DNA from: Amphiscolops sp. MND2022
Lineage: Eukaryota
Assembly (NCBI GenBank): GCA_964187785.1
Contig: OZ076421.1
Location: 7,192,001-7,256,000 of the forward strand
Reading direction: 5' to 3'
DNA length: 64,000 nt
A model generated the notes under the pieces. It did no database searches and was not told the origin of the DNA. It saw only the letters and a list, made by a program, of their open reading frames with translations. A program made the translations under genes and the position numbers. This document shows positions 1,143 through 54,606 of the stretch, piece by piece; position 1 is the first letter of the stretch, and each line of letters starts with the position of its first letter.

Positions 1143-1153
1143 TGGCGCAGTCA
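1143..1153 (+). promoter_or_regulatory. Primer-binding site TGGCGCAGTCA, probably tRNA-Ser
   Basis: Directly follows the LTR end CA; complementary to a tRNA 3' end ...UGACUGCGCCA, similar to the tRNA-Ser PBS (TGGCGCAGTC) of insect Gypsy elements; same 11-mer at 37146. Confidence 0.75.
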
Positions 1154-1158
1154 GCAAG

Positions 1159-4100
1159 ATGGAAAATCAAAAAGCAACTGAGAGTACAGGCTCTTCAACT
1201 GGAGAAATCCAAGAAAGAGCAAACTCAAAAACCGAAAAGACACATCAGAAAATTACCCTACCAACATTCGAAAAACGCGGAATACAGGAGGCGAAGCTAT
1301 GGTGGAGACGATTCAAGCTGTATAATAAAATGACTCAAAACATCGATCTCAACACAATGACCACAGACCGTGAGATACTGGAAAATTACAGGGACGATCT
1401 GGAACACCGGATCAAAGACTTGTTTATTTGGGCATTGGGCGAATCAGCGATACCGGAAATGACAAGAACCGTTAGGGACAATGACCCAAATCGAATGGAC
1501 ATAAATCAACTGTACTCATTTTTCCGGTTACACTTAATACCGGAACAAAACAAATTCCGTAGTAGAGCCGACTTCTTTGGAATAACAAGAGAGAAACACG
1601 AATCAGCGGAAGACGTGTGGACGAGAATCCTTCAAGTGGAAAAGGATTGCGAGTTCGAGAATGTAACGCCAGCCGAACTAATAGCGTCAAAGTTTCTCTC
1701 TGTAATTGGACGATCAACAGGAGACTACGAACTAAAGAAGAAAATTAGAAAAAGTGACATGACGATAGAAACGATAACAGCATTGATACATGAACACATG
1801 TACGACCGACTAAATGACTCGAACAATTCGAACGACGGAAGAGAAATAAAATACGTACAAGAACGGCCACACAAACGAAAATGGACAGAAAGAACCGATG
1901 CAGACAAAATAAAGAAAAGACCAAAATATCAAAATCAAAAACCAAAAGATAATCGATGTGGACAATGCTGAGCACCAAATTGGTCAAGACAACATATCTG
2001 CCCAACAAAATCAGCAGAATGTAGAAAATTGCAAAAGAAGGGGCCACTACGAAAAGATGTGTAGATCGATGAGAAGAGTACAATACGTTGACAAAACAAC
2101 ATCTTCAGCAGAAGAAGATAATTGGGATTATGACAAAATCCAGAGAATAGAAAATACAAAACAAAAGAAAGGCTTTTACAATGCCACACTATTGGTCAAC
2201 AGCGTACCAATCAAATTCATTATTGATAGTGGATCGCCAGTAACACTTATTCCGGAATGCTTTTTGAGCAAAATTACACCAATTGAAACACTCAAGACCA
2301 CTTATAAAGATGTAAACATTCAAAAGATTGACTTTACAGGACAGACGAAAGCAAAAAAATGGTCAAAACAAACAAAGAAACAATGGAACTACCACTATTA
2401 ATTACAAAAGCACAAACCGCCCCGTTAATGGGACTGGACTGGATGCAACGGCTGAAAATCAACTTCAAACAACGACGCAATCCAAATCCACAACATAAAG
2501 TTGGACAACACAGAAAGAAAAATCATAAAACTCCAGAACGACTTCAAAGATTTGTTTTACAACAACAAAGAGATAAAGAATCTCTCAGTGAAAAAGTATT
2601 TGAAAACTGGAGTTCAGATAATACAACAAAAAGGACGACCAATCCCACTACATTTACAATACCAAGTGGCACAGGAGCTGAAACGCCTATTATAACATGG
2701 TTATGTAGAAAAGGCACCAGAAATTACTGAAAACTGCTTCGTAAGTCCTGCGGTAATAACCGTAAAAAAGGACAAATCGATAAAAATCGCACTTGATTTC
2801 AGAAAATTGAACGAAATTACTGTGAAGCGAAAAACACAAATGCCGAATATGGAAGAATTGATATCACGGATCTCAAGAAAGATATCCGAAGGAGAAGACG
2901 GAGAAGTATTAGCAACAAAGCTCGACTTCGATTATGCATACGGACAAATCAAATTAGACGACGATACAAAAAATTTGTGCATATTTACCGTCACAGGAGG
3001 TGATTTCACTGGGTACTACCGTTTCTTGAAAAGTTTCATTGGACCGGCGGACATTCCGACGATTTTCCAAGAACGGATAGACACGACGCTAGAACACAAA
3101 CACCCGGCTTGGTTAGACGATATAATTATTGTCACCAAAGGAAACCTGGAAAAACACGAAGCGCAAGTACGTGAAACAATGACGAAACTGGAAAAAGCAG
3201 GATATAGATTAAATCCAAACAAATGGGAATTCTTCAAAAAAGAAATCGAATTGGTTGGTCACAAAATTGACCAACAAGGGACACGACACCTGCAGGACAA
3301 ATTGGAGGCAATAAAAACGATCAATATTCCAAAAAACGAAAAAGAATTAAAATCATTTCTGGGGGCAATCCAATACTTGTCAAAGTATATTGAAAACCTA
3401 TCAACAAATACGGACATTCTACGAAAACTATTGAAAAAGCAAAACGAGTGGATCTGGACAGAAGAACATACAAGAGTTTTCAATAATTTGAAAGAATGCA
3501 TCACAAAAATCCCGTGCTTAGCTTACTACAACGCCCAGAGCGAAAACATAATTACAACAGACGCCAGTACAAAAGGACTGGGGGCCAGGCTTTGGCAAAA
3601 ACAAAAAACCGGCGAATTAAAGCCAATTGGATTTGCAAGCCAATTTCTATCCGATACAGAAAAGAAGTACGCAATAAACAAATTGGAATTGCTAGTCGTA
3701 GTATGGGGTCTAGAACACTTTGGACTAAATATCTACGGAAAACCAAATGAACTTTTAACAGATCACCAAGCGCTAGAACCATTGATCAAAAGAAACAGGT
3801 CAACTAAAACCTATAGCGCGAGACTAACAAGATGGTTAGATCGCTTGGCTCACTTCGACATTAACATTAAACACATCGCCGGAAAGCACTTAGCACTAGC
3901 GGATTATCTGAGCAGAAATCCAACATCAATGCCAGAACCCATTGAAAACTACGACAAAGAGTACGTAATTAATTGCATAACACCATCACTTGAGTTCATC
4001 AACAATTACGGCTCTATTACCGGTAAGATGAACAAAGAAGCGCGAACGGACGATATCGAGAAGTGTGAACAGAAATTCAACCAATCAGAATCAAGCAAGC

Positions 4101-6136
4101 CGAACGAACCGAAGTCAAAATTGAACAAACAAACAAGCGCAGTTCGTTGCTACCTCAACTCAATACAGTCGATCGCAATACCATTAACAACGTCAAACAC
4201 AATTACGAAACAATAATGGACATTCGCCGCATTGAACAAATTGAAGCAGAATACCCGTCCGAAGAAACATCACAGCTTGTGAACCGCTGGAAAAAATAAG
4301 TAAACCCGGAGAATATAGAACATCTAAAGGAAGCTGGAAAAAGTATAATCCTCCAAGACACCATAGAGCGGAAATAAAACTAATCGAGATGAGTTTAAAC
4401 CAAAGAAGGAATACAATGCTCTGCAACCGCATGGAAGAACAAGACAAAGAACCCGAAGATAACACCACTAAAAGAGAAGAACTCTACCGGGGGATAGAAA
4501 AAATCAGAAACATGCCGACAAATTAAGATGGAGGACAACCGGAAACAAGGGACAACACAACGAAAGTAGAACGCCAACCAGAAACAAACGAGACAGATTC
4601 AACGAGTTCCGCCGACTCATTCGATGTACCAGTCATTAACTTCAAAAGATACCTCGGTACGACCGGAGTTAGATACATCCAAATGGGACAGGCCAGTCAC
4701 ATCCAAGGCGAAAATAAATGGGACTTAGAGGAAACCATCAGACAAACTAACGATGAAAAGCTGTTAAAACATTGGTATGTTTGGAAAGAAGAACGCCGGA
4801 GCAATTACCGGATGATTACAAACCATACCACAAACAGCGGTCAACACGATTCGGCGTGGTATTTTACGATGACCGAATCATAATACCAAAGTCACTGAGA
4901 ACAACAATCATCATGCTCCTACACAAAGGACATGCGGCAATTAACAAAATGACGACGGCGGCAGAACCATTCTGGTGGCCACAAATGACACGAGAAGTAC
5001 AACAAAAATGTGACGAATGTATTCCGTGCAAAATGGCAGGTAAGAACATTAAACCACAAATACCAATGACTGAGATTAACTTTTTACCACCGGTAGAGAA
5101 AACGAATCAAGAAATCCAATTGGATTTCATTGGACCAATAAGATTTAAGCACCGGAGATTCTACATATTACTTTCTATAAACCGGTACAGCAGGTGGCCG
5201 GCTTATGCGAAGCCCCGACAGGAAAAACGAATTTGGAAGAAGGCTACAATATGAACGAAGAATTAAGCCGTTCACTAAACGTAATGAGAACAACGGTCCA
5301 TTCTAGCATAAAAGAAACACCGTTCGAACGCCATTATGGCAGAAAACCACGAACGGAAATTCATAACTAGTTAAATATGTCGCCAAACAAACATTATAAT
5401 GTTTCAGCGAGACCGGAGACACTACAAGTCTACACATTCACCAATGGGAACGGAGCTTACGACCAATTGGTTATGAAAGCCCCAAGAAAGCTAAAAGAAG
5501 ACGTGAGCAACAAATTCCCATACCTATTTCTCGAGAAAAAACAAAACAAAGGAAAATTTGAAAACGCATATGAAAATAAACCACAAACCGCGGTAGCCGG
5601 AACAAAACACACAAAAACAACCGATAAAAACAAAATACTTCATAGAAAACGAATAAGCAAACCATTGAACCCAATATTTCAGAACCCATTATCCCGACGG
5701 GGAGAAAACCCGACGGGAAAGGACGGAAGATTCCTACAACAACGACAACTGGAAGGAGACACAGAGGACCTAGACGTAACGGCAGAACACTCAGAGAGAT
5801 GTAGCACGCCAATTTTAGAGGAGAACATACTGGACAAAACACTGGAAACGGAAAACACAACAATCAGTCCAGTGTATGGCAGAGGCCGAAAAAAAACTGA
5901 TAAGAGACAGAAAACCAAATACAACTCCAACACCAGGATTGGAAATAAACGCAAGACCAACAACAGAAGACGACCCAAACGTGATTACAGTAGTGGACCA
6001 AAACGGTAATAATGATTTAATAAAAACTGAAAACATAGAAGAAATCGAAAACCAAAACGAACAAAGTATACGAAAGTCAACCAGACTAAGATCCACTAAT
6101 CCAATAAAAAGATATGGTAATCCAATCACGTTCTGA
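1159..6136 (+). pseudogene. gag-pol pseudogene of element 1
   Basis: ATG at 1159 after the PBS. Gag with double knuckle CGQC*APNWSRQHIC / CKRRGHYEKMC (TGA at 1969), protease FIIDSGS, RT WLDDII, RNase H TTDAS, integrase HHCC (LHKGH...CDECIPC) and QLDFIGP. Broken into ORF-track pieces 1027, 1958, 2359, 2501, 2807, 4772, 5377, 5876; integrase D/E core deleted near 5230. Confidence 0.92.
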
Positions 6137-6382
6137 CTATTACAGGTAACACCCTTAACAAATGGAGCGCACAGGATAACCAATAAAAGAGGAATGAGGG
6201 AACGACCGGAAGACATAAAGAAAGAAAATTCGGAAAGGAAAGAAGAAGAAGATTATACGGAACAAACCGTATACAAAACAGTCATAAACATTTGGACCAT
6301 TCGGTGCTATCATTACCGTTTGAATTTTGACTTTATTAGTGTATTGTCTATTTACGTTTATACATGTAATTATCTCCTATAC

Positions 6383-6391
6383 AGGGGGGAA
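6383..6391 (+). promoter_or_regulatory. Polypurine tract of element 1
   Basis: AGGGGGGAA immediately before the 3' LTR TG at 6392. Confidence 0.85.
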
Positions 6392-6586
6392 TGTGGCATG
6401 ACGTCACTTCATGCAGTAATGTACATGTATACTATAAATAGTAGCTATGACATTTTAGTACCTGTCAAAGATGCTACTGCTAGAAACTATGCTGATCTAT
6501 TCATTAACCTTCAAAATACGCATACCGATTGGAAAAGATTCTTCAGCATTACCATTGTTCTTATCTTATATTCTTAAGATACAACA
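6392..6586 (+). repeat. 3' LTR of element 1 (195 bp)
   Basis: Direct repeat of 948-1142, followed by TSD AACGT. Confidence 0.96.
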
Positions 6587-25230: not shown

Positions 25231-28200
25231 GTTCTGGACATCTGTTTTGTTTTTTCTTTTCGTTTTGGACGCGCTTCTGAGGCTGGAGTTGTTAAGGTTT
25301 GAAGTTAATGAGGTTTGACGTTGTCGAACAAATGAACAAAAAAGTGGACCTTACGCGTCTAAAAAAAATTTCCGACGATCAATAAAATTTGAGATATTTA
25401 TGAAGATAATTGAAATTTTTCGAAAAAAAGCCAAGTCGCACTTTAATTTTGAACTTTTTTATTGCAAATTTTCAACTTTTTTGAATGTTTGTTGCTAAAA
25501 AAGTCCAAGACGGGTGATATACCGGTGATAAGCTCTCGTTTTTTCTCGTTTTATTGGAGTGAACCCTTGCTTGAATCGATAGTGGAATTATTTGGTTTGC
25601 AGGGGAAACATTGGCCTAGAGATTACTTACTTTTGGAGCCAGTTTTCTTGAATACCTCCGACTAAAAACATCTGCATGAATAAAACGCCCAAAAATCACC
25701 ATAGTGCTGCTGTGATGTTTGTATTTAAAAAAGACCAGCAAATATAAAACAGGAAATTGAACCAACTTTGAGAGAGAGAGGGAGGGAGACGAAAGTATAT
25801 GAACAAATAATGGCGGTGGTGACGGCCAATTAACAACTGCCGCAGAACAAAAGGAATAATAGGAAATACTTATACTGCGGAATTTTACTAATTAAAATTT
25901 CTATCAATTACCGCGGTGTTTTAAAATCTAAGCAAAATTGTGATTGGTTGCATGCAAAACATGCCAATCAGGCAATCTTGCAGATTTGCTCGACTGTTTT
26001 TATACGTTCTACTTCGACGGAAGATTCATTTTTCTCGACAAACGGCACAGATTTAACTAAGAGCTCTCTTCCCCTCTCATTTTGGTGGAGAATTTTTACT
26101 CTCCTCGTTCGTTTCTGATTTGAGTTCTATATTAGAATTTTTCCGCTCTATTCATTCTGCTCTTACTTATTTCAACTCAGATATTTGGCCAACGATTTCT
26201 CACTGCGTAGAATTAGGATCCTATCGTAGAATAATGTTCGCTAGTTTCATATTCCGGCTGATTTTAAATTTTTAGCTGAGAACATTTTCCTGGTATGAAG
26301 ATGGAAATAACAGGCCGAAGTTACATAAATTTGTCTAAGTAACTTTTGTTGTGTAAACTGATTCACCTAAACGTTCTACTGCTATTCAAATCTAACTGAA
26401 AAGAGACATTAAAATTAAAGCGTGTCTTTCAAAACAAAGCGGATTGTATACTTCTTGTGTTTGACAAGTAAATATCCGAGAACAATTGGAACGTTCTTTT
26501 TTTGTTCTATCGATGTCAACTTCAGCTGTAAATTGCCCAAGATGTAGAGCAGTCAATAACAATCTCTTTTATAAACGCGGTTGTTTTAGGAATCTGCTGT
26601 ATAGCTGATTTAAAGGATTGTGGAATAAGGACTGCTGTGACTCGAAGTATAACTAAGTTCAAAATTTCTACTTCTGTTGACGCCTGTCAATTGCAAGATC
26701 GGAAACTATCATTTGAACGTGACTTATGAAACCTATAATTTAGAACACTTGAGACTGCGTCAAGATTTCACATGAAAATTACCCCTTTTAGCAAAAGTGG
26801 AAGTGTAGCTAAAAAAAGGTCATCCGCCCCCTTTTAAAAAAGCACTTATGCAATCACGTAAGTGACGTAAGTTGATCTCTTCAATGCTCAATTTCGTGAT
26901 AATAGTTATTATGTGATTTTCTCGTATGACCTTGAAGGAAAGGTGGTAATTATATTGGAACTGATGATCATCACAATGTGTAAACACTCTTTCGAACCCA
27001 CCTAGCAAACATGCCAAACCACCACCAAGATTCTATACCTAGCCAATATCATTAAATTATGCTTCAACTGACTTATATTTATACCACATTTTCGCCTTAT
27101 ATTTACTGGAAAGATTGATGATACAGTTACATACCATTACTAAATGGAAAGTAAAACGACTGAATAGCTGAAGTCAAGTTGGGTCTGAAGACCAAGAGAA
27201 TATTTAACTTTCCATGCTCTTAAAACGTTTCTCTAAAACTCAGAGCGAATGAGTAATTGGAGAGTCGGAGCGCGTGAAGATGAAGAGCGGAAAGTTTGTG
27301 ACGGACCTCAGAAGATTCACCCTAGTATAAAGCAAGATCGCAGGAGATTCTACAAGTCCAATCGGACCAACCAGCTAAAAGATGCAATCCTTCAGAACTC
27401 GAAAACAAGGATTGTTTAGTAAATCTCCACAGTACTAAACAACTGATTAGGGCGGCAGTAAAGCTTGTGAAGATTCAGCGCAACATAAGGGCAAGCAGTC
27501 GTTGCGACTTCCTTTCAATAATTCAACATATTTGTTTCGTATACGTTTTCTGAACACAGAAAACTCATTTACAGACACTGCTTTGCACTTCTTCGCGCAA
27601 AGTCTTTTGTTCTCACGTACACGACAGGCATTTCTCCTTCAGCATTACGCAGAGTAAGCTATTGAGGGTCTCTTATTCACGGTTATTCAATAATGGAACA
27701 GCCTCCTTTCAGTTTTTTTCGGCATTGTGAGAGTTTTTCGAAAAATTGCAATGTCTTCAAAAGGTCCCCTTCAAATGTTCACAGGTGGATGTGTAAAAAT
27801 GGATGTTAAAAATATTTCATTTATTAGTCCTTTATTAATAACAAAGTTTAGTCGACAATACACTTCGATTATCAGGTTTGCGAAACCTAAAAACAACCTG
27901 GCATTTCCCAGAACGAGTTAATGTTTTTTCCTTAACTTTGAATAAATTGCGATTTTCATTAAGCCCATTGAAGCCCTTGAAGGTGTTTGTTAGTCCGTAG
28001 GTCTTCAGTTAGAGGGTTTAAATACTACTGCTGCCAAAGTAGATATACTATTTTTCGAAAAAAAAAACAAAATGCTACTGATAATACGCAGTTTTACACG
28101 GAAAAGCAACTAGCTTTTCTCAAATTGCAGATACTGAATCAAAATCAAATTGCGAGTTGGTTCGTCTCAGCTTTTACAGACAAAAATCTATAAAAATTGA

Positions 28201-28329
28201 GCGATATTGCCGGTATTTATATGTAGTTTTCAGTTGACAATTTTTTCGTCACTTTCCAGGTATTTCTCATGGTATGTTTTCTATCAATTCTTTTTCTGTT
28301 TAAGCAGTCTTCACTGAGATCCCTCGAAC

Positions 28330-29318
28330 ATGGTTTCAAGTAGTCCTAAAACTGGGATCCATAGATTCTTTCTGGCAATCTACTCTGCCGCTGTCGTTGC
28401 GAGTTTGGATGAACATGTTATAGACGGCCATACCCGGCATTATCACAACATGGATAAGGACATCCCATCAATCGAGCACTGGAATCATTTGTTTGTTAAA
28501 TGGTCAATCCAAACAAAATCTTTACTTGATCAAGGCCGCTTGAGAAGAAACACAAAAGATCTTCCAAGCATTGATGAGATCGAAAAGTACATCGCTACTT
28601 TCAAACCTGCTTTCACGGAAGCCACTGATGTACTGAAGAAACTTGTGAACCATTCGGCAGTTTTGTCGGGGAGGCTGAAATCTGCATCGAGTGTGCATGA
28701 GAAATTGGAACGCAAGGGGTACGATTTGAAGGATCTGACCGATATAATTGGTATGAGATTGACTTGCCAAACAGTGGACGAGACTCTGAGAATCAAGGAC
28801 TTGATCAGCAACACTTCGAAGTGATGGAGACCACATGTTACGGAATGTGTCCTGGAGCTGGGAAATACAAGGAATCGGGATATCGGCGCATCCACCTGAT
28901 ATTGCTCATCAAGTCAGAGAACAAAACAATGGAGCTGCAAGTCGGGACCCCCTACACCAATATGTGGGCAGACTGGGACCACGATTTGGTCTATAAAGGT
29001 CCCAAAGAGTTCGCAGACGATGAAAGTGTGAAAACTTACTCTATTGCGATGGCTGATTACTTCCTGAAACTGGATCAAGAGAGAAACCAACTTCCCGACT
29101 GTCCTGCAATTATGGAGGAGGTCAGCGCGTTGGATATTCTGAGAGACAATGCTGGTGGAGCAGATGCATATGCACTGTATGAAAAACTTGGGTTCCCGCC
29201 CAATGCCTGTTTTTGGTGGAACGACATGAAGTTGGCACTGCCATCTAATGCACATGGCGCCGCTTCAAGTATCCCATTGGGTATTTTAAGTCTGTCTATC
29301 GGGGTTTTGATAAACTAA
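28330..29318 (+). CDS. RelA/SpoT-family small alarmone synthetase-like protein with signal peptide and putative GPI-anchor signal (one-base frameshift near 28806)
   Basis: ORF 28330-28824 has RLKSASSVHEKLERK and DIIGMR; overlapping ORF 28764-29318 has SGYRRIH, ELQVGT and WADWDHDLVYK. Adding one C after 28806 (ATC CAG CAA CAC) joins them into a 329-aa ORF. N-terminus FFLAIYSAAVVAS; C-terminus SNAHGAASSIPLGILSLSIGVLIN. Confidence 0.88.
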
Positions 29319-29455
29319 ACCAGATTGATAAACTAGTACATATTGGCTGATGAAAAAGATTAAACTTTGCCTGATGAACTTTATAAATCTCATTATCTCA
29401 TGCACCCTTTCTTCCTGATCACGTTTTAATTCTCATAATATGCCTATATCTGTTC

Positions 29456-29461
29456 AATAAA
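29456..29461 (+). terminator. Candidate polyadenylation signal AATAAA of the RelA/SpoT-like gene
   Basis: AATAAA 138 nt after the stop codon; the AT-rich context makes a chance match possible. Confidence 0.45.
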
Positions 29462-31303
29462 TTCAGTAACAATCAATTGTGAACTTGATTCAACCGTCTA
29501 AGCAAGTTTTGTCAGAATCAATTTCAAGCACATCGTGGTAGCAAAAAACTAAATGCTTTTTTGAAAAACCTTCAGAAAATGCATCCAGGCGTGAAAAATC
29601 TCCTGGTTATGAAAAAATCTGCATGGATTCATTCTACAATTTCCTTAACAGGATGCTTTCCCCGCCTTGTTTTGGACAGCCAAAATGGACAGCCAGTTGA
29701 GATGCTTAGATGACAGATTAGTGATCCTGTGGGTTGGTTCCATTGGTTCCCATGCAAACGAACCTTAAGTTGAAAGATATCAATATCCAAACTAGCTTAA
29801 TACATCTTTACAGAATACATCCTTACTGGGCCTAGTATTTTCTTGAGTACTCAACTTTTTACCCAATTATTCAATGTTTACCTTTTTACTCAATCCACAA
29901 ACTGTCTGACACGGTACGGTGTAGGAAAAAATATTGGCTAAGATGTGATCTACTATGTTGTCAGCTTGTCCGCGCAGCCTAGACATTTGCTGCACGTGGT
30001 TCGCGAATGGATTGGTGGAGTGAAAGTTGTTTGGCTCTGTTGTTGACTCGTCTAAGGATCTGATGGATTTTCTAGTGTACTAACGCATTATCTGTTTCGA
30101 ACTCGATCCTTACTTTCACAAACTTAATGAATTTTTGTCTGCCGCTATTTTTCTTCTGTGAAAAATGGACAAGGAGGGGGGTGCTGAACGATATGGGTTC
30201 TCGACTTTGTTTGATTATCTCAAAGACTCAATCAAAGTATTGTCTAATAGAGCTATCAGCTCCGTTCAGATAACTACCGATGATGAAGAGGAGTACTTGA
30301 CTCTTGAGTCGTTACTCTTGAAACACTATGGCTAGCGTGGAAAACCAGGGATTTTCTCAGAACAAAACATTTCCATTTGCTAGTCGGAGAACTTTTCTAA
30401 AGCTTTCTAAAAAGAAAAACTTCGAGAAACTCTAAACGATACTACACTCTAGACTACTGTTAGGTTAACCGCTGAGCTTACGGGTGAATGAAATAAAAAT
30501 ATTTTGGCGCTTTGAATAAGTTTTGATGATCAGCAAAGCGATCACGACGTTTCACGCCCTAACCGTACTTTGGTCACTCGCACTGTTCTTTGGTTAGAGC
30601 GAACGAGTGAGGTTGCAACGGACACGCGAGGACTGGTGATAGACCTTGGGGGTGAGTAGATACTATGACACTTGTTATGGGGCGATTGCTGCTACTGTGA
30701 TTGTAAAACGATCAGAAGAGAAAGCGCAATCTTTCACTCAAATAGACCCTACTGTACTTGTTGTTCTGTTAAGACGCACTGCGTACTAAGTCAACATCTT
30801 CAGAAGTGTCCTCAAACACTTGCTAGCTCTTGCACAGCGCTTCTAGGTTGAAGTATACGTGATCTCAACTAGAAGTTTGCAAATAGCTGACTTTGAAAGC
30901 TGTTGATAGAGAAAACACGCTTTTTGTGTTTTTCAATACTACGTCTCGTAGACAGTTTTTCGGCAGACCACGATTGTTAAAATGGTCTAATCACTGCGCA
31001 AAACGCTTCGGCAAAACAATACACGTGCGTCCAGTGTAGAAATGAGGTGATTAGAGCACTTACTTTAAGCTCAGACGGCGACTATCGAGCGATTTTTGTG
31101 GGAAATCTGTCAAAATCAGATAACTTTTTTCGACAAAACGCACGTCTGAGGAAAGTGAATATCACTTCTAGTGATGCTAGCGACCTGGAAATTTCACAAG
31201 GTGTACTATGTTAGGTGAATTGTGGGAAAGGGACCGCCCATTGCGCTAAAATGTACTATACGTGAAGTATGGGGCCTTTACACTGTTGTTTCAAAAATGC
31301 TTA

Positions 31304-34300
31304 CCCTAGTTGAGACTGCTGGAACTTTTTACATGCTGCAGGCCTGCATGCAGGGTAATTTTTTATAAAACCTAGAAAAGTCATTAAGGTTCCGGTGGTA
31401 AATCTTGTAGAATTACACTGGATTTTCCGCTACTGCAATTAAATTTGAAAATATTTCCCCCTTCTTTTACAGACATGATCACGTTGTCTTCACACATTGA
31501 TTTTGCAAATACTCATCTGATTTAATCACCGCGTCTCAAATAGAACGCTGAAGATGACGCTAGTTTGCTGTTTACATTGTGAATGAAGTTAGTTTGCATT
31601 AAAATGGCGGCAAAATTGTAGGGGTCTCAGCTGCACTTAAAATTAGAACTGATGCATATTAAAACTTGCAGAACTTCATGGCTTGGAATTGCCGCCAAAA
31701 CTTTGATGATTCTTTAAAGCAGCTTGATAAAAGTTGGTGACAACAGGGAAATATTAACGCATTAAAGTTTCCGTAAGGTATTTCGATTATCATAATAAAA
31801 GTTGCTGGCAACATTAAAGTACACATAAAAAGTTGAAGCATGTTCAACAAAGGCAGCGGGCGTCTTGTATTATATAGATTACGTTGTCGTTGCTAACCTT
31901 ATCTACGAGTACTGATATACTTAATTGTACAAGGAGTATACTCAATCCTCAATTGAGGGGATGTCAGAGAGTGACCTTTACTCTCGAACAGAAAATTAAG
32001 AACATTAAATTGAGCAAGTTGTTCATAAATGTTTCCATGCATAGTCTGATATTATTTACAAACACATATGTATCAAAGAACCAAAAGAACTGGGCCATTC
32101 ACCAAATGGTCTTATACAATACAGTCTTTCTCAAGATTCTCTCTCAACAAGCAGTCTGCGACCATCGTTGATATTATTACAGGTACTTTCTCCAGCGTTT
32201 TTGAATTCTCTTCATTTGAACACTCATATTTTACAAAAAGTGGTTACTTTTTATAGTAGTTAGCATGCGTGGCTGGGGAGCAGCCGTTCATGTGTTCGAA
32301 TTCCGCACTGGTCCAAAATTATTTCACATTTGCTAAGGTACACGAAACCAAAAGGCCCCCTTTGGGGTTTTTCTTCACACTGAGATTTTTTTCAAAAACT
32401 GTCCTATTTCACCAAAAAGTTTCTTTTGGATTCATTGATTTTTTTTCCGTAAAGAAAAGGCGTTTTCCGAGCTGTTTCGGTTTTTCGCTTGGTGCAATTT
32501 TCTGAGAAACCATTTTTCGAGAAATTCATCCCAATATTTTGGATTTTAGTTGCTCAGCGTTAAGTACAATTGTTTACAGAGCCTGAATGACCCTTTCATT
32601 TTTCTACTGCTTTTTTAAAAAATCACCACTGAGCTTTTTGACCTCAAGCAAAGCACCGACTTAGACGGTTCCTTTTTGCTGAACTAAGTAGGCACTTCCG
32701 AAAAAAAAAGTATTGAAGAAATTCACAACTACGCGAATTTTCGGTGATCTAGTTAATTCGTACAACGCTAAACTTGATTCGATTTTAAACACTTATCAAA
32801 TTTCCTCTTTTACCGATAATTCGATATCTCTTTTCCTCTCAGATAAATTATTCACACAAGGGTCCCATTTTGTTATACTTACATAACTCATGTAATCGCT
32901 CCAAATTTAGCTTCTATCTACATTTTAAGCATTGAAAAATTGAACTCTCCGAGATATATGCTGCAATTATATTCTGTAACTAATTTGAGCGGAAACTGAA
33001 TTTCGAAACTTCCTAAAGTGAAAATAATGAAAAGCGCCCGCTGAGCTGCAGTTTTTTTCCACCATGAACTACTTTAGCAACAGAGAATCAAAAATTGTTT
33101 AAAACTTGCACAAAATTCCACAAGTATATTTTTGGAGAAAATATACGTTTCTAGCTTTTTAAGAACATTTGAGCGTGACCACTAATCTTGTACCAGTTCA
33201 AAACTTGTACAGAAAGATCAAGAGACTGAATAAATATAACTTTTGAAAATTTTGATATTCAGGAATTTTTTCAATAAACAAGGTTTTTTTTCAATGCAAT
33301 GAAACTGTTTTTGTCTGTGAAAGTCTATGAAAAGGGCTCTTGTCTTTTGAGTATAGACTTACAGAGAAAATTGAAAAAATGCTGAGCGATTATTTTCATG
33401 AAGGAAAATTCAAAGTCAATGTCTTTCAGCAATATTTCTTGTAACAGCCTTTCAAACTGCGAGAGATTTTATTCAAAAAAAGTCTTTGCCATTTAAATAT
33501 AATACAGATGCTATCTCGTTATACTAATAATGAGTAGTTAAAGTTTTCAAGTAACTCAACTCAAAACTTTATACACAACCTCAGTCTAATATTTCATAAA
33601 CAAAAAAAAAGACATTTAATTGTGAAGTGAAACTATAAAAATATTTCTAATTACAATTTCTGGCTCTTCTACCTAATTTTATTCTGCCAGTGGTCACTCG
33701 ATTAAGAAACCTATTTTTAGGGCCAGTTCTTGAAACATTATACTTGGGATCAATTGCGAAATGGAAAGCAGAGCCATTTAGCCACGTTAAATCTAATCGG
33801 TGCCTTTTGAATTTTTTCTGCCAAACACTGCTCGGGGTAACTATTCTAATTTATGTGATAACAACAATAATCCATCATTAGACCAAGCCAAAATTGCAAC
33901 CTTTGGCGCTATATTCCGGAGATAGCTCCCGGCAAATTCGCATGGGAAACAAAGGATGTGAATTTCGAAGGGAAGCTAGCGCTAATTTAATTTTACACAG
34001 TCAAGCCTTTAAATTAAGGCTCTATTTAGCAAATGGGGAAGTCTTTATTTCACAACACTCATGCAAGCGGCGTGAAATAAATTGGTGGCACAAAAAATGC
34101 GACCTTTTTCTCCGCAGGTTGTAATTAGTGAACATTTTGAGCTCGCTTTCAAACAAATAGACCAACATATATTTCGCAATTCTTGGAACCGCCGGCTTCA
34201 AAATAAAAATTGCAGGCTGATTTATTTCAAATTGCAATCCATTTTGATTTCAACATGAAAGTTCAACCCAGTCGTATTGCGCTACGAGCATATACAGACC

Positions 34301-37184: not shown

Positions 37185-40100
37185 ATGGAAAATACGAACA
37201 ACAACAACGAAACCGACCCAACGGCGGTCAACCAAACAACAGTCGAAAGGACTGAAAGAAACAAGTACAAGATCCCGATCTTATCGGATAGAGAAACTGA
37301 CCTATCAAAAGCCAATCCCAAAATGTGGTGGGAACAAATATCCGAATACATAGATTTGACATACCAAAAGAAACTGGACGAGCTGATGGAACAAGGGACG
37401 GACTCCATGGACCCTCATACAACCTATCACATCAAAGGTGATGTTATATGGGCACTGGGCCCAAAAGCAAAGCACGAAATCATGAGAGGTCAATGGGGAA
37501 AGGAACTTAAAGATATTAGTCTCCAAGAGTTGTTGAAACTATTCAAAAAGACCTTCCTACCAACCAGGAATGTATTCCACAGCCGGGCCCAATTCTTTAA
37601 TATCAAGCAAGAAGATGGCGAAACCCTAGACGAGTACTGGAAGAGGCTGGTAGACATCGAAAGAAAGTGCGAATTTAACACCATCACACCCGAAGACATC
37701 ATTTCATACAAATTCGCAGCAACCATAAACGATAAAAAAGCCCGAGATAAATTCATCAAAGGCCCACTGAAATTATCACTGATATTGGAGACCATTGAGC
37801 TGGACAACTATAACCGTAAATATGGAGACAAACAAACAACCTACAAGAGACAGCGGAAAAACTCATCCGAAAGCACATCAGACGAGGAACAGGTCGGATA
37901 CACAAAACCCGCAACGAGGAAGAAGGCCACGTTCACGGCTAAAAAGAGAAACACGGAGCGGAACTGCCACTTCTGCGGAAAATCCAACTGGACACCCGAC
38001 CACACTTGCCCAGCACGGAAGGCAAAATGTAACAACTGTAAGAAGTCCGGTCATTTTGCAAAGGTCTGCCGATCAAGAACCGTAAACCGGATACAAGAGG
38101 AAGATACCGGTAGCAACACGGAATCATGGCCAGAAATTGACCATATTCAGTCCGTCAACGGCATAAATCGAGTAGACTTCTACAAAGCCATCCTATTGGT
38201 GGACGGACAACCAATTGAATTCATAATTGACACCGGCTCTCCAGTAACGATTATCCCACCAATTATCACTCCAAAACAAATGAAAGCGACTTCAAAGTGT
38301 TTCGTGGACGTAAACAAAAACCCGATAGAATTCAAAGGCGAAGCAATAGTTGAGGTCAAAACAGAGAAAACAAAAGTGATGTTGCCAATCTTAATAACCG
38401 AGAAAAAGAATACACAACCCTTGCTGGGATTGGATTGGCTAGATAAATTGGAAATCGGTTTGCAAGGAAGCCACGAAACAAACATCATCAGGAGCATAAC
38501 CACAAACGAAAAAGGTGAGAAAATTTTTAAAGAATTCGAGGACCTTTTTAAAAACAATCACACCATAAAAAACTTAACCATAGACATTCAATTGAAAAAA
38601 GACGCAAAACCGATACAACAAAAGGGGAGACCAGTACCAATACACTTTCAAAAAATCGTGAAAAAAGAATTAGAAAAATTAATCGAAAAAGGACATTTGG
38701 AAAAAGCTGATAAAACAACTGAAAACTGCTTTGTCTCACCAGCCGTTATAACAATCAAAAAAGACAAATCAGTAAAAATTGCACTAGACTCCCGGAAACT
38801 AAACGAATCTTGCATAAAAAGAAAAGCAACAATGCCAAATATGGAGGAACTAATCAGTCAAATTTCCGCAAAAATTACACAAAATAACGGCGAAATTTGG
38901 ATGTCCAAAATTGATTTAGATTATGCATATGGACAGGCCAAACTATCCGCAGAAGCATCAAGACATTGCGTGTTCTCCATCATTGGCGGCGATTTCACGG
39001 GACACTACCGGTTCAAGAAGGGATTCTACGGCCTATCTGACATACCAACGGTATTTCAAGAACATATAGATAAGGTCCTAGAATTCAAAACGCCGGTATG
39101 GTTAGATGACATCATTTGCGTCACAAACGGAACGATAGAAGAACACGATCGGGAACTACGCGAAGTTCTAATAAAATTGCAAGAAGCCGGTTACCGAGCG
39201 AGTGAAAGAAAAACAGAACTGTTCAAAAAAGAGCTAACCTGGTTAGGGTACTTGATAAACCAAGAAGGGGTAAAGCCAATTAAAGATAAAACCGAGGCTA
39301 TAACAAAATTAAAAGCCCCCACAAACACAAAAGAGCTAAAATCTTTTCTGGGCTCAATACAACATTTATCAAAATTTTTGAACAACTTGTCTAAAAAGAC
39401 AGACAGAATGAGAAAATTACTCAAGAAAGACGTAAAATGGGAATGGACGAAAGAAATAAACGATGATTTTGAACAACTAAAAAAGGAAATAACCGAAACA
39501 CCATGTCTAGCACACTTCGACCCGAAGAAAGATAATTTCATAACCACCGACGCCTGTAATACTGGATTAGGGGCAACCCTATGGCAGAAAGAAAATGAAA
39601 CATTCAGACCGGTGGCGTTTGCCAGCCGATTTCTCACCGAATGTGAACGAAAATATGCTATAAATGAACTAGAATTGCTAGGCGTCTTGTGGGGCCTCGA
39701 ATATTTCAGATATTACGTTTACGGAAAAAAAGTAAACCTTTTGACCGACCACCAGGCACTACAACCACTGCTAAAGCGAAACAGGGCCCACAAACAATAC
39801 AGCGCAAGATTAACACGGTGGCTTGACCGATTGAGCCATTTCGATGTCAACGTGCAATACACCGCTGGTAAAAACATTCCGTTAACAGATTACTTAAGCC
39901 GTCATCCGATCATACACGAACACGAAACGGAAACGCCACACGAAGGCGATGAAAGCGAAGCCGAAGAGGAATTCGTAATCAATCAGATATACGGCTTATT
40001 CGAGTTCAATCGTACGAACGGCAGTATTACGCAACACATGCGACGACCACCACCGGTAAAGAATTCCGACCAATCAGAACGCAGAACGCAAATACGCAAA

Positions 40101-42479
40101 CAAAACGACCGCGAACATTCAATCCAAACTTTCTCACCGCAAAAAGATATTGACTCACCAAACAATTCAAACCTTGATTCGCAAGCACCGAAAATGTCAA
40201 AGATGGATAAAGTAAACGGAATCGATTTACAGTTTATATTCAAAAAACGGGGACATTCCCCAGAAACTAGCCGTCTACGGACCGAACGATTTAAACTTCT
40301 TCAACCAAATCGAACCAGAATTGTGGGAAAAGGCAAGGACAACGAGCGGATATTGGAATATCGTCCTTCACAACAAGACCGAAAAGAAATTGAGAAATTA
40401 AACATCTTGATTTACAATAGATTCTTTTACCATTGTGAGAAACTCGGGACCACCCCACTCAGGGAATTTAACGAAAACCAACACGAGTCTTGGATAAACA
40501 CCTCGTCAGACAATGAAAGCCAGATTAGCCACGTAAAAACCGAAAAGTGCCCAACAAATATCCTCAAAAAGTTCAAAAAACATGAGAGCATCAATCTTAT
40601 CAGATTGAAACAAACAGCGAAGCGAAATGTCCTGCCAGAAGAACGAAACGAGAAAACAGCCGAAACGATCAGAAGAGCCGAAAGAGACTTTTCCATGGAT
40701 TTACCTCTACTAGTTGAGGAAACTGCACAGGACACTAAAATACTTGACGCAATTATCGCGCTAGAAGCTGGAAAAAGAGACGGTATCTTCTACCCATACC
40801 GACCACACCGTGAACATCTGGAGACCAGATTTGGACTATTATTCTACAATGATAGAATAGTCATTCCAGAAGCAATGCGGTCAACCATAATTGCCATGCT
40901 ACACAGCGGCCATGTCTCGATCAACAAAATGGACAAATCAGCAGAAGCATTTTGGTGGCCGGGACTACATCGGGACATTAGAGAAAAGGCAGAAAACTGC
41001 CCCAGTTGCCGAGTAGCAGGTAAGAATCTAAAAACACAATTACCGCAAACGGAAATAAATAGGCTCGAACTTTTAACCGAACCCGGCCAAGAAATTCAAT
41101 TGGACTTCGCCGGTCCAATCAAATCAAAATCGCGCGGAGACATTTACATTTTAGTAGCCATCGACCGTTTTAGCAAATGGCCAACCGCACAAATTTGCAA
41201 AAATACGGACTCTCGGACCGTAATAAAGTTTTTAACAAAATACTGCACCGACAACGGAACACCGAAAACGATACGCACCGACAACGGTAGCTGTTTTAAA
41301 AGCAACGAGTTTAAAGATTACTGCAACGGTGAAAACATTAAACGAATTAGGTGTACCCCGAATTTACATACGGGAAACGGATTGGTCGAGAGAACGATAC
41401 GCACAATTAAGTCATTAACAAGAGCCAATTTAGAAGACGGCCTAACTTTTGAAGAAAGCGTCGCAAGGGCAATTAAAACAATTAGACAAACACCACACAA
41501 CATACTGAAAATGACTCCCTTTCAATTACACCACGGACGAAAACCACGCACACCGATCACCAATCTGATTGGACAACCCACCTGCCTATTAGCGGACTGG
41601 AAGAAAACATTAACCAATTATTTTTTAGCACAACCGGCGGAGCTACAAGTTTTTACAGTCCACGATTCCGACGGGGAACTCGCAGATTATTTGGTCCTCA
41701 ACGAGTCAAGGAAGAGGGGTAGATCGGTAAGAGACAATTTTAAAAGTTACCAATTTTTTGAAAAGGATACCAAGCCCAATGCAATGAAATGCAGGTTCAA
41801 AACCAATAAAATTTTAACCGCAGCTAATGAGACTAAACATACGATAACCACAACCGATGGAAAGGTTATCCACAAAAAACTAGCATCTAACCCCTTTAAA
41901 TTTCAGCCAGCAAAGAAAACAGAAGAGCCGAGGAAACCCACCAACAGATGCACCAGATGCGGCCGATTCAGTCACGATGATCTATGTGACACCCACAAAA
42001 GAATCCGTTCCGAACAACAGGGACAATCAACGAGCGCAGATAAAACCATCCCCACAATGCCAATTGAAAGGTCCGAAGCACGACCGGATATCACGGTAAT
42101 ATCCGACAGCCAGTCATCACACGCGGATGAATTACCGAGCACGGCAAACATTGATCCGGAACTAACCATTACAGCCGAAATTAAATACGACGATGCCGTG
42201 AAACCAATAGAAGAGACTCGAGAGAACGAAACTCCCGCCATATCTCCACCAGTGGACTGCAGCACGGAGAAAACAAAGCGTACTGCTAAGGACTTCGACA
42301 ACACCCCTACTGGGTCGCCACAAAAAATACACACGTCCCCAAATAGAGGTGTAGTAGAACTTAATTTAGACGGGGGGGAAAATATAGAAAACAAGGTGGT
42401 AGAAAAAGGGATCCGCAGATCAGACAGAATAAAATCTGCAAAAAGAGTAGTAAAAATGGGAGGAATAGAATATTTCTAA
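37185..42479 (+). CDS. Gag-Pol polyprotein, 1764 aa (Gag with two zinc knuckles, aspartic protease, RT, RNase H, DDE integrase)
   Basis: CHFCGKSNWTPDHTC and CNNCKKSGHFAKVC; FIIDTGS; WLDDII; TTDAC, ELELLG, TDHQAL; LHSGH...CPSC; QLDFAGP, RTDNG, GLVER. Confidence 0.98.
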   Translation: MENTNNNNETDPTAVNQTTVERTERNKYKIPILSDRETDLSKANPKMWWEQISEYIDLTYQKKLDELMEQGTDSMDPHTTYHIKGDVIWALGPKAKHEIMRGQWGKELKDISLQELLKLFKKTFLPTRNVFHSRAQFFNIKQEDGETLDEYWKRLVDIERKCEFNTITPEDIISYKFAATINDKKARDKFIKGPLKLSLILETIELDNYNRKYGDKQTTYKRQRKNSSESTSDEEQVGYTKPATRKKATFTAKKRNTERNCHFCGKSNWTPDHTCPARKAKCNNCKKSGHFAKVCRSRTVNRIQEEDTGSNTESWPEIDHIQSVNGINRVDFYKAILLVDGQPIEFIIDTGSPVTIIPPIITPKQMKATSKCFVDVNKNPIEFKGEAIVEVKTEKTKVMLPILITEKKNTQPLLGLDWLDKLEIGLQGSHETNIIRSITTNEKGEKIFKEFEDLFKNNHTIKNLTIDIQLKKDAKPIQQKGRPVPIHFQKIVKKELEKLIEKGHLEKADKTTENCFVSPAVITIKKDKSVKIALDSRKLNESCIKRKATMPNMEELISQISAKITQNNGEIWMSKIDLDYAYGQAKLSAEASRHCVFSIIGGDFTGHYRFKKGFYGLSDIPTVFQEHIDKVLEFKTPVWLDDIICVTNGTIEEHDRELREVLIKLQEAGYRASERKTELFKKELTWLGYLINQEGVKPIKDKTEAITKLKAPTNTKELKSFLGSIQHLSKFLNNLSKKTDRMRKLLKKDVKWEWTKEINDDFEQLKKEITETPCLAHFDPKKDNFITTDACNTGLGATLWQKENETFRPVAFASRFLTECERKYAINELELLGVLWGLEYFRYYVYGKKVNLLTDHQALQPLLKRNRAHKQYSARLTRWLDRLSHFDVNVQYTAGKNIPLTDYLSRHPIIHEHETETPHEGDESEAEEEFVINQIYGLFEFNRTNGSITQHMRRPPPVKNSDQSERRTQIRKQNDREHSIQTFSPQKDIDSPNNSNLDSQAPKMSKMDKVNGIDLQFIFKKRGHSPETSRLRTERFKLLQPNRTRIVGKGKDNERILEYRPSQQDRKEIEKLNILIYNRFFYHCEKLGTTPLREFNENQHESWINTSSDNESQISHVKTEKCPTNILKKFKKHESINLIRLKQTAKRNVLPEERNEKTAETIRRAERDFSMDLPLLVEETAQDTKILDAIIALEAGKRDGIFYPYRPHREHLETRFGLLFYNDRIVIPEAMRSTIIAMLHSGHVSINKMDKSAEAFWWPGLHRDIREKAENCPSCRVAGKNLKTQLPQTEINRLELLTEPGQEIQLDFAGPIKSKSRGDIYILVAIDRFSKWPTAQICKNTDSRTVIKFLTKYCTDNGTPKTIRTDNGSCFKSNEFKDYCNGENIKRIRCTPNLHTGNGLVERTIRTIKSLTRANLEDGLTFEESVARAIKTIRQTPHNILKMTPFQLHHGRKPRTPITNLIGQPTCLLADWKKTLTNYFLAQPAELQVFTVHDSDGELADYLVLNESRKRGRSVRDNFKSYQFFEKDTKPNAMKCRFKTNKILTAANETKHTITTTDGKVIHKKLASNPFKFQPAKKTEEPRKPTNRCTRCGRFSHDDLCDTHKRIRSEQQGQSTSADKTIPTMPIERSEARPDITVISDSQSSHADELPSTANIDPELTITAEIKYDDAVKPIEETRENETPAISPPVDCSTEKTKRTAKDFDNTPTGSPQKIHTSPNRGVVELNLDGGENIENKVVEKGIRRSDRIKSAKRVVKMGGIEYF

Positions 42480-52535: not shown

Positions 52536-54242
52536 ATGCCTTCCACAAGAAAGCAGAAAGCAAAGGAAAAGCGGTCAAGGCAATCAGACGTAATGACTGA
52601 TCTTGAAAAAATGAATGACATGTTGGGAAATTACCCGGAAAATCAATCAGACGTTGATCTGAATGAAAATGTAGAAGTGGACTCAAGGTCCAATGGGACA
52701 AGGACCGACATGATCAAGAATTGTGAGGATTTTAGGACGTTATTAATTTCAGAAGATAGAAATAGATGTGAAACGACAATGGAAACTAATAGACTCATTT
52801 CTGAGGAAATATCTTACCACTTGAATAGGAAAATAGATGAACTGAAAAGGAATTTTGACACACAAATTACAGAGTCTATTAACTCTGCAATTCATGATTC
52901 AATCCTTCCTTCAATCCAAAATTCGTTGTCAGGACAAAATAGCGGGGTAGGGACAAATGTGGACTCAAGGTCCAGTAGACTAAGCAGGAACACCGAAGGC
53001 AAAAAGCACCAAAGTGCTTGGGAAAATACACAAAATAGAGTACAGTCAAACTTAGACAATCATCACCGTTCTAGAGATAGCTCAATAAGCTCATTGGACT
53101 GTAGGGATGATCATGCTATGGTGACAGGAGCCAACCCTACCCCTCGTATGGTTCCTGAATTTCTTACTGGGCGACCCACACAATCCCGAGATAACCCGCA
53201 AAACCAAGGCCCCGTAGATCCTATGTCTCCTACCACGTCACCCCAAGACAAGGAGACTATGGTTCCCAATCCGGCTATAGACCCTCTCACATGCCTTGCT
53301 GATGTTTTAACGGGTATGACCAATAAGCAAACCCCACAAACACTCATGGTACGACCCGTCAGCACAACTACACAAACTTTTGACGGGAAATCTGAAAAAT
53401 TCGAACTCTTTGAAGATCTTTTTCATACAATGATAAAAATGTAACCAGAAATGACTGAAACAATGAAGATTAACCACTTCCAATCCCTCTTACGTAAAAA
53501 TGCACTACAAACCTTTCGTAATATCAACTCCGCCAATAGGCAGACACTGGAAGTCGTCCTTGCGGTCTTCCGACGAAAGTACGTCAAGCGGGAATCTCAA
53601 GCCACTGCCAAACACAAATGGCATAAATTAGTGTTCGACCCCAACACTATGAAACTTCCAGATTTCCTTGAGGAACTCAACCAGGGAGCAGAAAAAGCGT
53701 TTGGCGAAAAAGCCCAAGCAATGATCGACAGCTTCTTATACGCCAAACTGCCCCCCAAACTCAAGAGATCGGTAAATATGACACGGCTTGAGAACGCCTC
53801 ATATGAAGAGATCGTTACCCATTTGGAACGCGAACTAGAACTCAACGGACTTGAGGGAGGTGACGACATTACTGTACCTACAATGTCTACTGCCCCTACA
53901 GCGACACGACCGGGAACTGGCCTCCTTTCTTCCAGCATTGATCCCAATGTCACCTGCAACTACTGCAAAAAACCTGGCCACGTCAAAGATGACTGCCGAA
54001 AACTCAAACGAAAAGAGGAACAAAGACGCAACGACGGACAGGATAACAAAAAAGAATATCCAAAATGTCCAACTTGCGACAAAACAAACCACCCGGCGGA
54101 ACGATGTTGGAAAGGCGCTGGAGCCCACCTCAAGCCCAAAAACCTCAAATTGGAGGACGCAAAACAAGATGATGCGCCCACCATCTCATATGATACTAAC
54201 AACAAGCAACCCTCTTCTATCTTAAAAAACTCAAAAAACTAG
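52536..54242 (+). pseudogene. gag of element 3 (long N-terminal extension, capsid-like region, two Cys/His knuckles), one in-frame stop
   Basis: MPSTRKQKAK...; TAA at 53442-53444 in frame with 53451; FDGKSEKFELFEDLF; CNYCKKPGHVKDDC and CPTCDKTNHPAERC. Confidence 0.9.
54233..54239 (+). promoter_or_regulatory. Candidate -1 ribosomal frameshift heptamer A AAA AAC at the gag end
   Basis: TCA AAA AAC TAG puts AAAAAAC in the correct X XXY YYZ phase right before the gag stop; pol starts downstream in another frame. Confidence 0.55.
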
Positions 54243-54606
54243 ATTTGCCACGACTCCAATTTAATGAAAAACTACGTGTCAGACAGTATATAATTTCTGA
54301 CTCTGCTACTATATTCTACACTGAATATTATTCAACACTTAGGGGCATCTCATCGGCTGACTGGCAGCAGCAAATGAGAGTCACCCCTACTCAATTTTGT
54401 ACTTCGGACCTTAGGTCCAACTGACTTGACTCGACTTCATACTCCATCCGTCCTCTCCCGGAGATACTAGACTAAAACCCCTATTATCAAGACCCGGATT
54501 ACGGCACTGACCCCTACTGGGACGATCGCCTCTACAATCAACATCATCTATATTTTTATACCAACTTCAACAAATCCCGCTAGAAATCGAACCTGATTGT
54601 CTCGCC

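Follow-up and report, generated by a model that had tools for sequence, protein, structure and literature searches.

A frameshifted RelA/SpoT-type synthetase gene and its family of predicted secretory animal relatives

The DNA analysed here, which we call the window, is a stretch of 64,000 nucleotides (forward strand, positions 7,192,001 to 7,256,000) of contig OZ076421.1 in the assembly GCA_964187785.1, deposited as Amphiscolops sp. MND2022. It lies at 7.19 Mb on this chromosome-scale contig (C13), in an assembly of 1.07 Gb. At 28330-29318, on the forward strand, the window carries a RelA_SpoT gene that is divided between two reading frames. The 5′ open reading frame (ORF) starts at ATG 28330, comprises 164 codons and ends at 28824, and the 3′ part is read in another frame up to a stop codon at 29316-29318. 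The Pfam RelA_SpoT profile (PF04607) is likewise split, with a first piece covering profile positions 1-50 (36 bits) and a second one covering positions 63-111 (29.1 bits), both above the curated cut-off of 27 bits, and the five synthetase motifs are distributed over the two frames. An intact version of the gene also exists. The original prediction, which was made from the letters of the window, had relied on a “restored protein”, and a protein search retrieved its natural counterpart, P0001, of 332 aa, in which RelA_SpoT is also found and which is encoded without interruption on a 374,739-bp contig of an ENA assembly (L008). We read the window gene as a frameshifted allele of a single-exon cnidarian gene whose intact product, P0001, would be a pyrophosphokinase of the small alarmone synthetase (SAS) type that enters the secretory pathway, a reading to which we assign a probability of about 0.62.

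The contig that encodes P0001 aligns to positions 25330-32318 of the window with 99.19% identity over 7,000 bp and, as the unique flanks are included in this match, it is taken as this same locus, represented in a different assembly or haplotype. The coding sequence of the window differs from it by 10 substitutions and one 10-bp deletion, located between 5-bp direct repeats at 28801/28802, and the frame shift falls seven codons ahead of the TGA at 28822. As the deletion shifts the frame, the window allele could yield only a truncated product. This product could only be a 164-aa protein with the predicted signal peptide, the putative pro-region and the first two synthetase motifs; the acceptor loop and the catalytic Glu would be missing from it, and it would be inactive. 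An intron bridging the frameshift was also considered, but it was ruled out, as the other allele is colinear and merely 10 bp longer.

The deletion is probably a real null allele, and we consider it rather unlikely that it is an assembly error and that the gene is intact on both haplotypes of the individual. An error would agree with the second assembly of the locus, which carries the intact sequence, and with the available reads (four public runs of one sample, in the form of Logan contigs), in which all four runs follow the undeleted path at the deletion site and bin depth is fully explained without a junction-spanning contig. However, Logan contigs drop one allele at bubbles, and the C6:37.02M paralogue contains an identical copy of the undeleted 38-mer, which would bias bubble-popping towards the undeleted path; consequently, finding this path in the reads is not decisive. 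For the same reason, a loose end at 28802 is no proof of an intact allele in the reads. Moreover, the single-nucleotide alleles of both haplotypes are seen among the four runs, indicating that the sample is heterozygous at the locus, and the loss of 10 bp between 5-bp direct repeats would resemble replication slippage, unlike a typical consensus error. The deletion junction occurs only once in the assembly, and the reads neither confirm nor refute it.

The elements on which the original prediction was built are present in the window (Table 1). Those of the N-terminus, namely MVSSSPKTGIHR with its basic n-region (K/H/R), the hydrophobic FFLAIYSAAVVA, V-V-A and SLDEH, are all read from ATG 28330, which is the earliest start downstream of an in-frame stop, and Kyte-Doolittle hydropathy reaches 2.28 in a 10-aa window at residue 14. 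Towards the C-terminus, S-N-A lies at 29244-29252, at 24 residues from the end, and is followed by the spacer HGAASS and then by the tail IPLGILSLSIGVLIN, which has a hydropathy of 2.54 in a 12-aa window that is followed by a single residue. Both glycosylation sequons, NHS and NKT, are also present, and the joined protein has five Cys. What does not hold for the window is the claim of a signal peptide and a glycosylphosphatidylinositol (GPI)-type signal on one enzyme: although all of the motifs exist and are joined in P0001, the two ends are in different frames here and no single polypeptide carries both.

Table 1. Features of the RelA_SpoT locus (window coordinates) and SAS-family loci of the same genome (contig and approximate position)
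Feature	Position	Strand	Observation
TATA-like motif, putative	28214..28223	+	~107 nt 5′ of the ATG, read from sequence
Predicted endoplasmic reticulum (ER) signal peptide, aa 1-24	28330..28401	+	Basic K7/H11/R12; hydrophobic core of 12 aa; V-V-A ahead of the predicted cleavage
Putative pro-region, aa 25-73	28402..28548	+	Motif G-H-[ST]-R-x-[YF]-H; ends in furin-type RLRR (28537-28548); family alignment (A1)
N-glycosylation sequon NHS	28648..28656	+	Sequon at the same alignment column in 10/15 sequences
Synthetase motif 1, R-x-K-x3-S-x3-K (ATP phosphate binding in SAS enzymes)	28672..28704	+	Aligned to B. subtilis YjbM/RelQ 5dec
Synthetase motif 2, D-I-I-G-M-R (Mg-binding Asp of SAS enzymes)	28741..28758	+	D138 and R143 invariant in A1
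Frameshift point, 10-bp deletion relative to the intact allele	28801..28806	+	Exact place ambiguous inside a 5-bp direct repeat
3′ frame: rest of enzyme, C-terminal module, tail, stop codon	28803..29318	+	97% identity to P0001 residues 160-332
Premature TGA closing the 5′ frame after 164 codons	28822..28824	+	
Synthetase motif 3, G-Y-R-R-I-H, preceded by the family-specific C-Y-G-x-C loop	28878..28895	+	G187, Y188, R189 and H192 invariant
N-glycosylation sequon NKT	28920..28928	+	Sequon at the same column in 6/15 sequences
Synthetase motif 4, E-L-Q-V-G-T (catalytic Glu)	28932..28949	+	Gly where bacterial/phage E-x-Q-x-R-T has Arg
H-D-L-V-Y-K, closing the synthetase core	28980..28997	+	Alignment
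Stretch of small residues, S-N-A-H-G-A-A-S-S, with candidate omega sites (18-24 aa before the C-terminus) and spacer	29244..29270	+	Candidates SNA, AHG, GAA, AAS, ASS
15-aa C-terminal hydrophobic tail up to the stop codon, read as GPI-attachment-type signal	29271..29315	+	Hydropathy, family comparison
AATAAA polyadenylation-type signal	29456..29461	+	~140 nt 3′ of the stop, read from sequence
SAS-family locus	C13 (window)		10-bp deletion, frameshift
SAS-family locus	C6:36.80M		5-bp insertion, frameshift
SAS-family locus	C6:36.92M		Two in-frame TGA
SAS-family locus	C9:5.15M		One TGA
SAS-family locus, P0013	C6:36.997M		Open, signal + tail; catalytic Glu -> Lys, motif-1 Lys -> Ile
SAS-family locus	C6:36.02M		Divergent, open
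SAS-family locus	C6:37.02M		Open; separate exon ~400 bp upstream with signal peptide + pro-region
SAS-family locus, P0010 (L004, L016)	C4:16.68M (C4:16676247-16684980)		>= 3 exons, one ~7-kb intron; true transmembrane helix + basic cytosolic tail

Several comparisons relate the protein to SAS enzymes. The profile of the family (alignment A1) matches YjbM/RelQ of B. subtilis (5dec, E 2.8e-13) and then RelP and FaRel2. The AlphaFold model (AF2) has a mean predicted local distance difference test score of 71, with the core at 80-96 (residues 80-260 mostly at 83-96), and its Foldseek matches are RelP and RelQ (E 4e-11 to 1e-9; template modelling score of 0.6-0.77 on the target; root-mean-square deviation of 2.7 Å), followed by weaker ones to CapRel and to the exported SAS of Streptomyces albidoflavus (8vx3). 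A look-up in the ESM Atlas added nothing to this, with scores of only 0.80-0.81 to bacterial RelA_SpoT clusters. Five motif blocks (R-x-K-x3-S-x3-K, D-x-x-G-x-R, G-Y-R-x-x-H, E-x-Q-x-[G for R]-T and H-x3-Y-K) are conserved, being invariant or nearly so, in the relatives from Clytia, Hydra, Dendronephthya, Oculina and Strigamia. The animal proteins share with RelQ and RelP (SAS1/SAS2; PDB 5dec, 5ded, 6ewz, 6ex0) the fold and these motifs, among which are the Asp that binds Mg and the catalytic Glu, but the identity is only 21-28% and the tree places them outside the RelQ/RelP clade. They also have a predicted signal peptide, a putative pro-region and a C-terminal module of ~90 aa (P-x-C-P ... 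N-A-C-F-W-W-N-D-M), to which the hydrozoan ones add a hydrophobic tail. Within the core there are two systematic differences, a Gly in the place of the Arg of E-x-Q-x-R-T and a longer loop before G-Y-R, where C-Y-G-x-C is inserted in the acceptor loop. Both may affect the acceptor, and the protein would be expected to be an active ATP-dependent pyrophosphokinase.

It has been shown that bacteria export alarmone synthetases, enzymes with a low Km and a very high turnover, and that export prevents self-intoxication (Ahmad et al. 2025, PMC12691689). The original prediction invoked a secreted pyrophosphokinase from Streptomyces, but the phenomenon is not confined to that genus and is widespread in bacteria (PMC12691689). 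In these exported alarmone synthetases (EAS), such as SaEAS from S. albidoflavus (8vx3) and VpEAS/RelV from Vibrio, a SYNTH domain follows a cleavable secretion signal, and the enzyme acts beyond the cytoplasm (PMC12691689). A comparable layout is predicted for the animal family, of which they would be functional analogues. By contrast with the animal proteins, they use the Sec pathway and are soluble, without a pro-region or a lipid anchor. The match between 8vx3 and the animal family is weak (Foldseek E 7.6e-6, 14% identity, no match in the hidden Markov model search) and the tree contained no EAS sequence. The cnidarian family is, in its layout, the eukaryotic counterpart of the bacterial EAS, common descent not being demonstrable, and it seems to have acquired export signals of its own, independently of them and after transfer. 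As their secretory topologies are parallel, research on these two lines could be mutually informative.

The topology of the animal proteins was read from Kyte-Doolittle hydropathy, the n-region and −3/−1 rules, and conservation. In a hydrozoan-clade set of 12 full-length close relatives, which includes P0001 and P0013, a paralogue from its own genome, all 12 have a 10-aa window with a hydropathy of 2.05-3.08 within the first 25 residues, and all 12 have a 12-aa window of 1.64-3.07 that ends 0-10 residues from the C-terminus, as in a GPI-like tail. A hydropathy scan detected no internal hydrophobic segment in these 12 proteins. The sequences of the tails diverge among members, with their character being retained, and omega-type triplets of small residues are found 17-32 aa from the end in the 13 tailed members (13/13). 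When the same criteria were applied to 121 non-family relatives from phages and bacteria, nine had an N-terminal signal-like segment and five a C-terminal tail-like one, but none had both. The recurrence of this architecture in 12/12 hydrozoan-clade relatives despite their divergent sequences, together with its absence from the 121 controls, indicates that the signals go beyond chance.

A signal-peptide-like start (by heuristic criteria) was in fact found in every complete family member examined and, consequently, entry into the secretory pathway is predicted to be family-wide; a cytosolic tail-anchored protein was discarded on the same grounds. The start is usually followed by a region of ~40-60 aa that ends in a basic site of the R-x-[KR]-R type. 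This site lies at aa 52-77 in nine of the 12 hydrozoan-clade members, and similar basic or dibasic sites occur at the same boundary in anthozoan members, which suggests that the region is a pro-region cleaved by a convertase. The outward- or lumen-facing topology put forward in the original prediction is thus strongly supported by the family comparison, with signals in all complete members and both signals in 0/121 controls.

The nature of the anchor is a narrower question. A run of small residues with the omega site, followed by a short hydrophobic tail at the very C-terminus, is the classical layout of a GPI signal. P0001 has such a layout (SNA or GAA as omega candidates, a HGAASS-type spacer, the 15-aa tail and no cytosolic tail), and Gaa1 (PF04114), a subunit of the GPI transamidase, is encoded in the genome at C13:23790611 (E 3.3e-116). 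GPI anchoring specifically is therefore likely, judging from these residues. As an alternative, which we consider unlikely, the C-terminal segment could be a short transmembrane anchor or a signal for ER retention or degradation, and the protein would then be of the type I membrane class, lacking any lipid anchor. Two members, P0010 and P0028, do have bona fide transmembrane helices followed by cytosolic tails at the same position, and several tails pass a 19-aa transmembrane threshold. Nevertheless, the tails are of 12-18 aa, reach the C-terminus or stop within 0-10 residues of it, and in many cases include Gly, Ser or Pro, and small-residue runs with omega-type triplets precede them in all 13 tailed members. 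In any case, the transmembrane helix and basic cytosolic tail of P0010 and P0028 would give these proteins the same orientation as the tailed ones. The tail is limited to the hydrozoan clade and P0030, with a weak tail-like stretch in the anthozoan P0190, and membrane anchoring would thus be largely a hydrozoan elaboration, achieved through a GPI-type tail or, in P0010, a transmembrane helix.

The family has named members on large contigs of Hydra vulgaris (XP_065674469), Clytia hemisphaerica, Dendronephthya gigantea (two loci) and Oculina patagonica, and a centipede member in Strigamia maritima (T1IUF0, P0031). In databases, they are labelled only as “uncharacterised” or “RelA/SpoT domain-containing”, and a search of the literature on ppGpp and alarmone synthetases in cnidarians and hydrozoans found no paper describing the cnidarian family; searches by the RelA/SpoT wording, which was probably poorly matched, are weaker negatives. 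In the Hydra protein (P0024), two complete units are fused in tandem and the second has its own pro-region motif and basic site ahead of it, so that cleavage of this precursor could release two enzymes. Two domains are also found in P0028, a transcriptome-derived EukProt sequence with a predicted signal peptide, a transmembrane helix and a basic cytosolic tail. The Strigamia protein pairs in the tree with the Logan sequence P0030 (Shimodaira-Hasegawa-like approximate likelihood ratio test, SH-aLRT, 99), and it might be a real arthropod gene, a separate transfer or contamination.

Regarding the origin of the family, an exhaustive profile search returned 22 representatives at E < 1e-30, which are the animal family itself, and, below them, a gradual series that comprises shorter proteins as well as long multidomain ones in which the domain lies close to the C-terminus. 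The nearest relatives outside animals, at E 1e-29 to 1e-18, are phage and mobile-element SAS domains. The closest of all (L012 8001-8949 and L014 8001-8923) are located on phage-like contigs of ~45 kb, together with genes for a portal and an SNF2 helicase, their phage nature being inferred from the gene content of the contigs only, and others are fused to NUDIX, InPase, RadC, ART-like or SAM-lyase domains. Both L012 and L014 SAS genes are followed by an abutting or overlapping ORF of 66-67 aa, an arrangement that resembles a toxSAS-antitoxin pair. No such adjacent antitoxin gene was found at the window locus, a monocistronic eukaryotic gene between retrotransposons, and the small downstream ORF was seen only in the phage relatives. 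The phage and mobile-element domains have in common with the animal proteins the post-core segment Y-x3-M-x-x-Y-F-x-x-L-D ... P-D-C-P ... C, but they are cytoplasmic proteins that have neither a signal peptide nor a tail, and retain the E-x-Q-x-R-T that is altered in the animal family. When 138 domains were placed in a quick maximum-likelihood tree, the 23 rows of eukaryote type grouped together (SH-aLRT 86, or 97 for 21 of them), inside an unresolved set of phage and mobile-element clades and apart from RelQ/RelP-like sequences, a pattern that is consistent with a single ancient transfer.

On these bases, a mechanism may be proposed for the intact enzyme. The N-terminal signal peptide would bring the protein into the ER and, late in the pathway, a furin-type convertase would remove the pro-region of ~50 aa at R-x-[KR]-R, which may keep the enzyme inactive while it is inside the cell. 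In hydrozoans, the C-terminal hydrophobic tail would be swapped for a GPI anchor, with a transmembrane helix instead in one paralogue. As secretory entry is combined with an outward anchor, the catalytic domain would end up facing outwards from the cell or into the lumen of a secretory organelle. There, it would transfer pyrophosphate from ATP to the 3′-OH of a purine nucleotide, giving products of the (p)ppGpp/(p)ppApp type, like the bacterial exported synthetases.

The same features have also been considered in terms of a delivered toxin, that is, a venom, nematocyst or antimicrobial effector that, after secretion and removal of the pro-peptide, would enter prey or microbial cells and act by ATP/GTP depletion or by tRNA pyrophosphorylation, as with toxSAS and Apk1/Tas1-type enzymes. 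A signal peptide, a pro-region and a dibasic site are the usual layout of cnidarian secreted toxins, and that of the family matches it. All the named carriers are venomous (cnidarians and a centipede), most anthozoan members and those of Hydra and Strigamia are soluble and tail-less, FaRel2 and CapRel are among the structural matches, and the nearest relatives are phage or mobile-element SAS, two with the small downstream ORF found in toxin-antitoxin pairs and others within polyvalent proteins. However, the hydrozoan-clade members, including the window gene, have a membrane-anchoring tail that is a better fit to a resident surface enzyme, and no translocation or pore-forming domain is present. 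The literature searched also gave no link between the family and nematocysts, although the RelA/SpoT wording may not have matched it. We consequently find a delivered toxin improbable for the family as a whole, and rank a resident ecto- or luminal enzyme above it for the anchored hydrozoan members, while the toxin reading is plausible for the soluble anthozoan ones.

Several observations weigh against an intact secretory pyrophosphokinase and must be set beside those that support it. First, the window allele itself is broken, as are three further loci (C6:36.92M, C6:36.80M and C9), and none of the four runs with the locus is registered as RNA. Second, the replacement of Arg by Gly and the remodelled acceptor loop suggest that the acceptor may not be GDP or GTP. 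Third, the topology rests on the hydropathy, residue and conservation rules given above, and the anthozoan (other than P0190), Hydra and Strigamia members examined end soon after C-x-x-W-N-D, without a tail. Furthermore, the family-specific motifs C-Y-G-x-C, P-x-C-P and N-A-C-F include four Cys that are invariant or nearly so in the alignment, but two of the conserved Cys are also found in cytoplasmic phage relatives, and they are consequently weak evidence for disulfides. Finally, the supply of ATP at a cell surface in sea water is uncertain.

The number of broken copies also raises the possibility, in our view a very small one, that the family was acquired by horizontal transfer and is now decaying, having no function left in this species. 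The genome carries at least eight SAS-family loci, two of them spliced (Table 1), and four, the window gene among them, are broken, while the open paralogue P0013 lacks catalytic residues. Nonetheless, dN/dS relative to the intact allele is 0.27 for the window and 0.28, 0.45 and 0.18-0.32 for others (0.18-0.45 overall), even with broken copies in the comparison, which indicates that the copies evolved under constraint and that the breaks are recent. Moreover, an intact allele exists at the window locus, the spliced paralogues (C6:37.02M and C4) keep open frames together with signal-peptide exons and anchors, and the family has been kept across Hydrozoa and Anthozoa with invariant catalytic residues. 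The claim of domestication made in the original prediction gains from the chromosomal setting, the at least eight loci, the introns in paralogues, these dN/dS values and the homologues on large animal contigs. Bacterial contamination was ruled out by the chromosomal context, the intron-bearing paralogues and the cnidarian orthologues.

Five of the paralogues are clustered within 1 Mb of C6 (36.02-37.02 Mb; L001, L002, L003, L005 and L015): two recently broken, P0013, open but degenerate, one divergent, and one spliced and open. This pattern is one of birth-and-death evolution. The ORF at one of these loci, L001, has no signal peptide of its own, which is encoded by a separate exon upstream.

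To our knowledge, MESH1 (HDDC3) is the only RelA/SpoT homologue (RSH) described in animals. It belongs to the same RSH superfamily as the family studied here, but it is cytosolic and hydrolase-only, while the new proteins would be synthetase-only and secretory and, thus, no shared compartment is predicted. A MESH1-like HD_4 exon is located at C5:51867492-51867719 (L011), and the genome therefore has genes of both the RSH hydrolase and the synthetase type. Atkinson et al. (PMC3153485) found no SAS in animals, and a 2022 review (PMC9166373) states that metazoan genomes lack synthetase homologues. As a conserved animal family with intact synthetase motifs exists, the statement that animals have MESH1 and no RSH synthetase needs to be qualified. 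By contrast, the reports of ppGpp in flies and human cells are not explained by this family, as it was found only in cnidarians and one centipede.

A broader proposal, which we put forward tentatively and with less confidence than the reading of the window gene, is that cnidarians hold a domesticated magic-spot synthetase, taken from a phage or mobile element before the split between Hydrozoa and Anthozoa and then equipped with an ER signal peptide, with a pro-region cleaved by a convertase and, in the hydrozoans, with a GPI anchor, which would make nucleotides of the (p)ppGpp/(p)ppApp type outside the cell or in a secretory organelle, for use in host-microbe, defence or venom biology. If this were true, it would be the first alarmone synthetase from an animal and the first RSH enzyme with a lipid anchor. 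Hydra, Clytia and Hydractinia-type hydrozoans are tractable models in which to seek magic-spot nucleotides made by animals. The family is also a clear example of how an enzyme transferred from prokaryotes or phages gained eukaryotic targeting signals, introns and paralogues.

Lastly, the surroundings of the SAS gene in the window are rich in transposons, and the gene itself is flanked by Ty3/gypsy elements. An uninterrupted ORF at 37185-42479 (+) encodes a Ty3/gypsy polyprotein of 1,764 aa, with gag, reverse transcriptase, RNase H and integrase zinc-binding and core domains, and looks like a young retrotransposon copy. Fragments of retrotransposon pol genes are also found within 1027-6577 (+), with reverse transcriptase/RNase H at 2807-4216, and within 52536-59278 (+), with reverse transcriptase/RNase H at 55501-57267 and integrase at 57173-59278.

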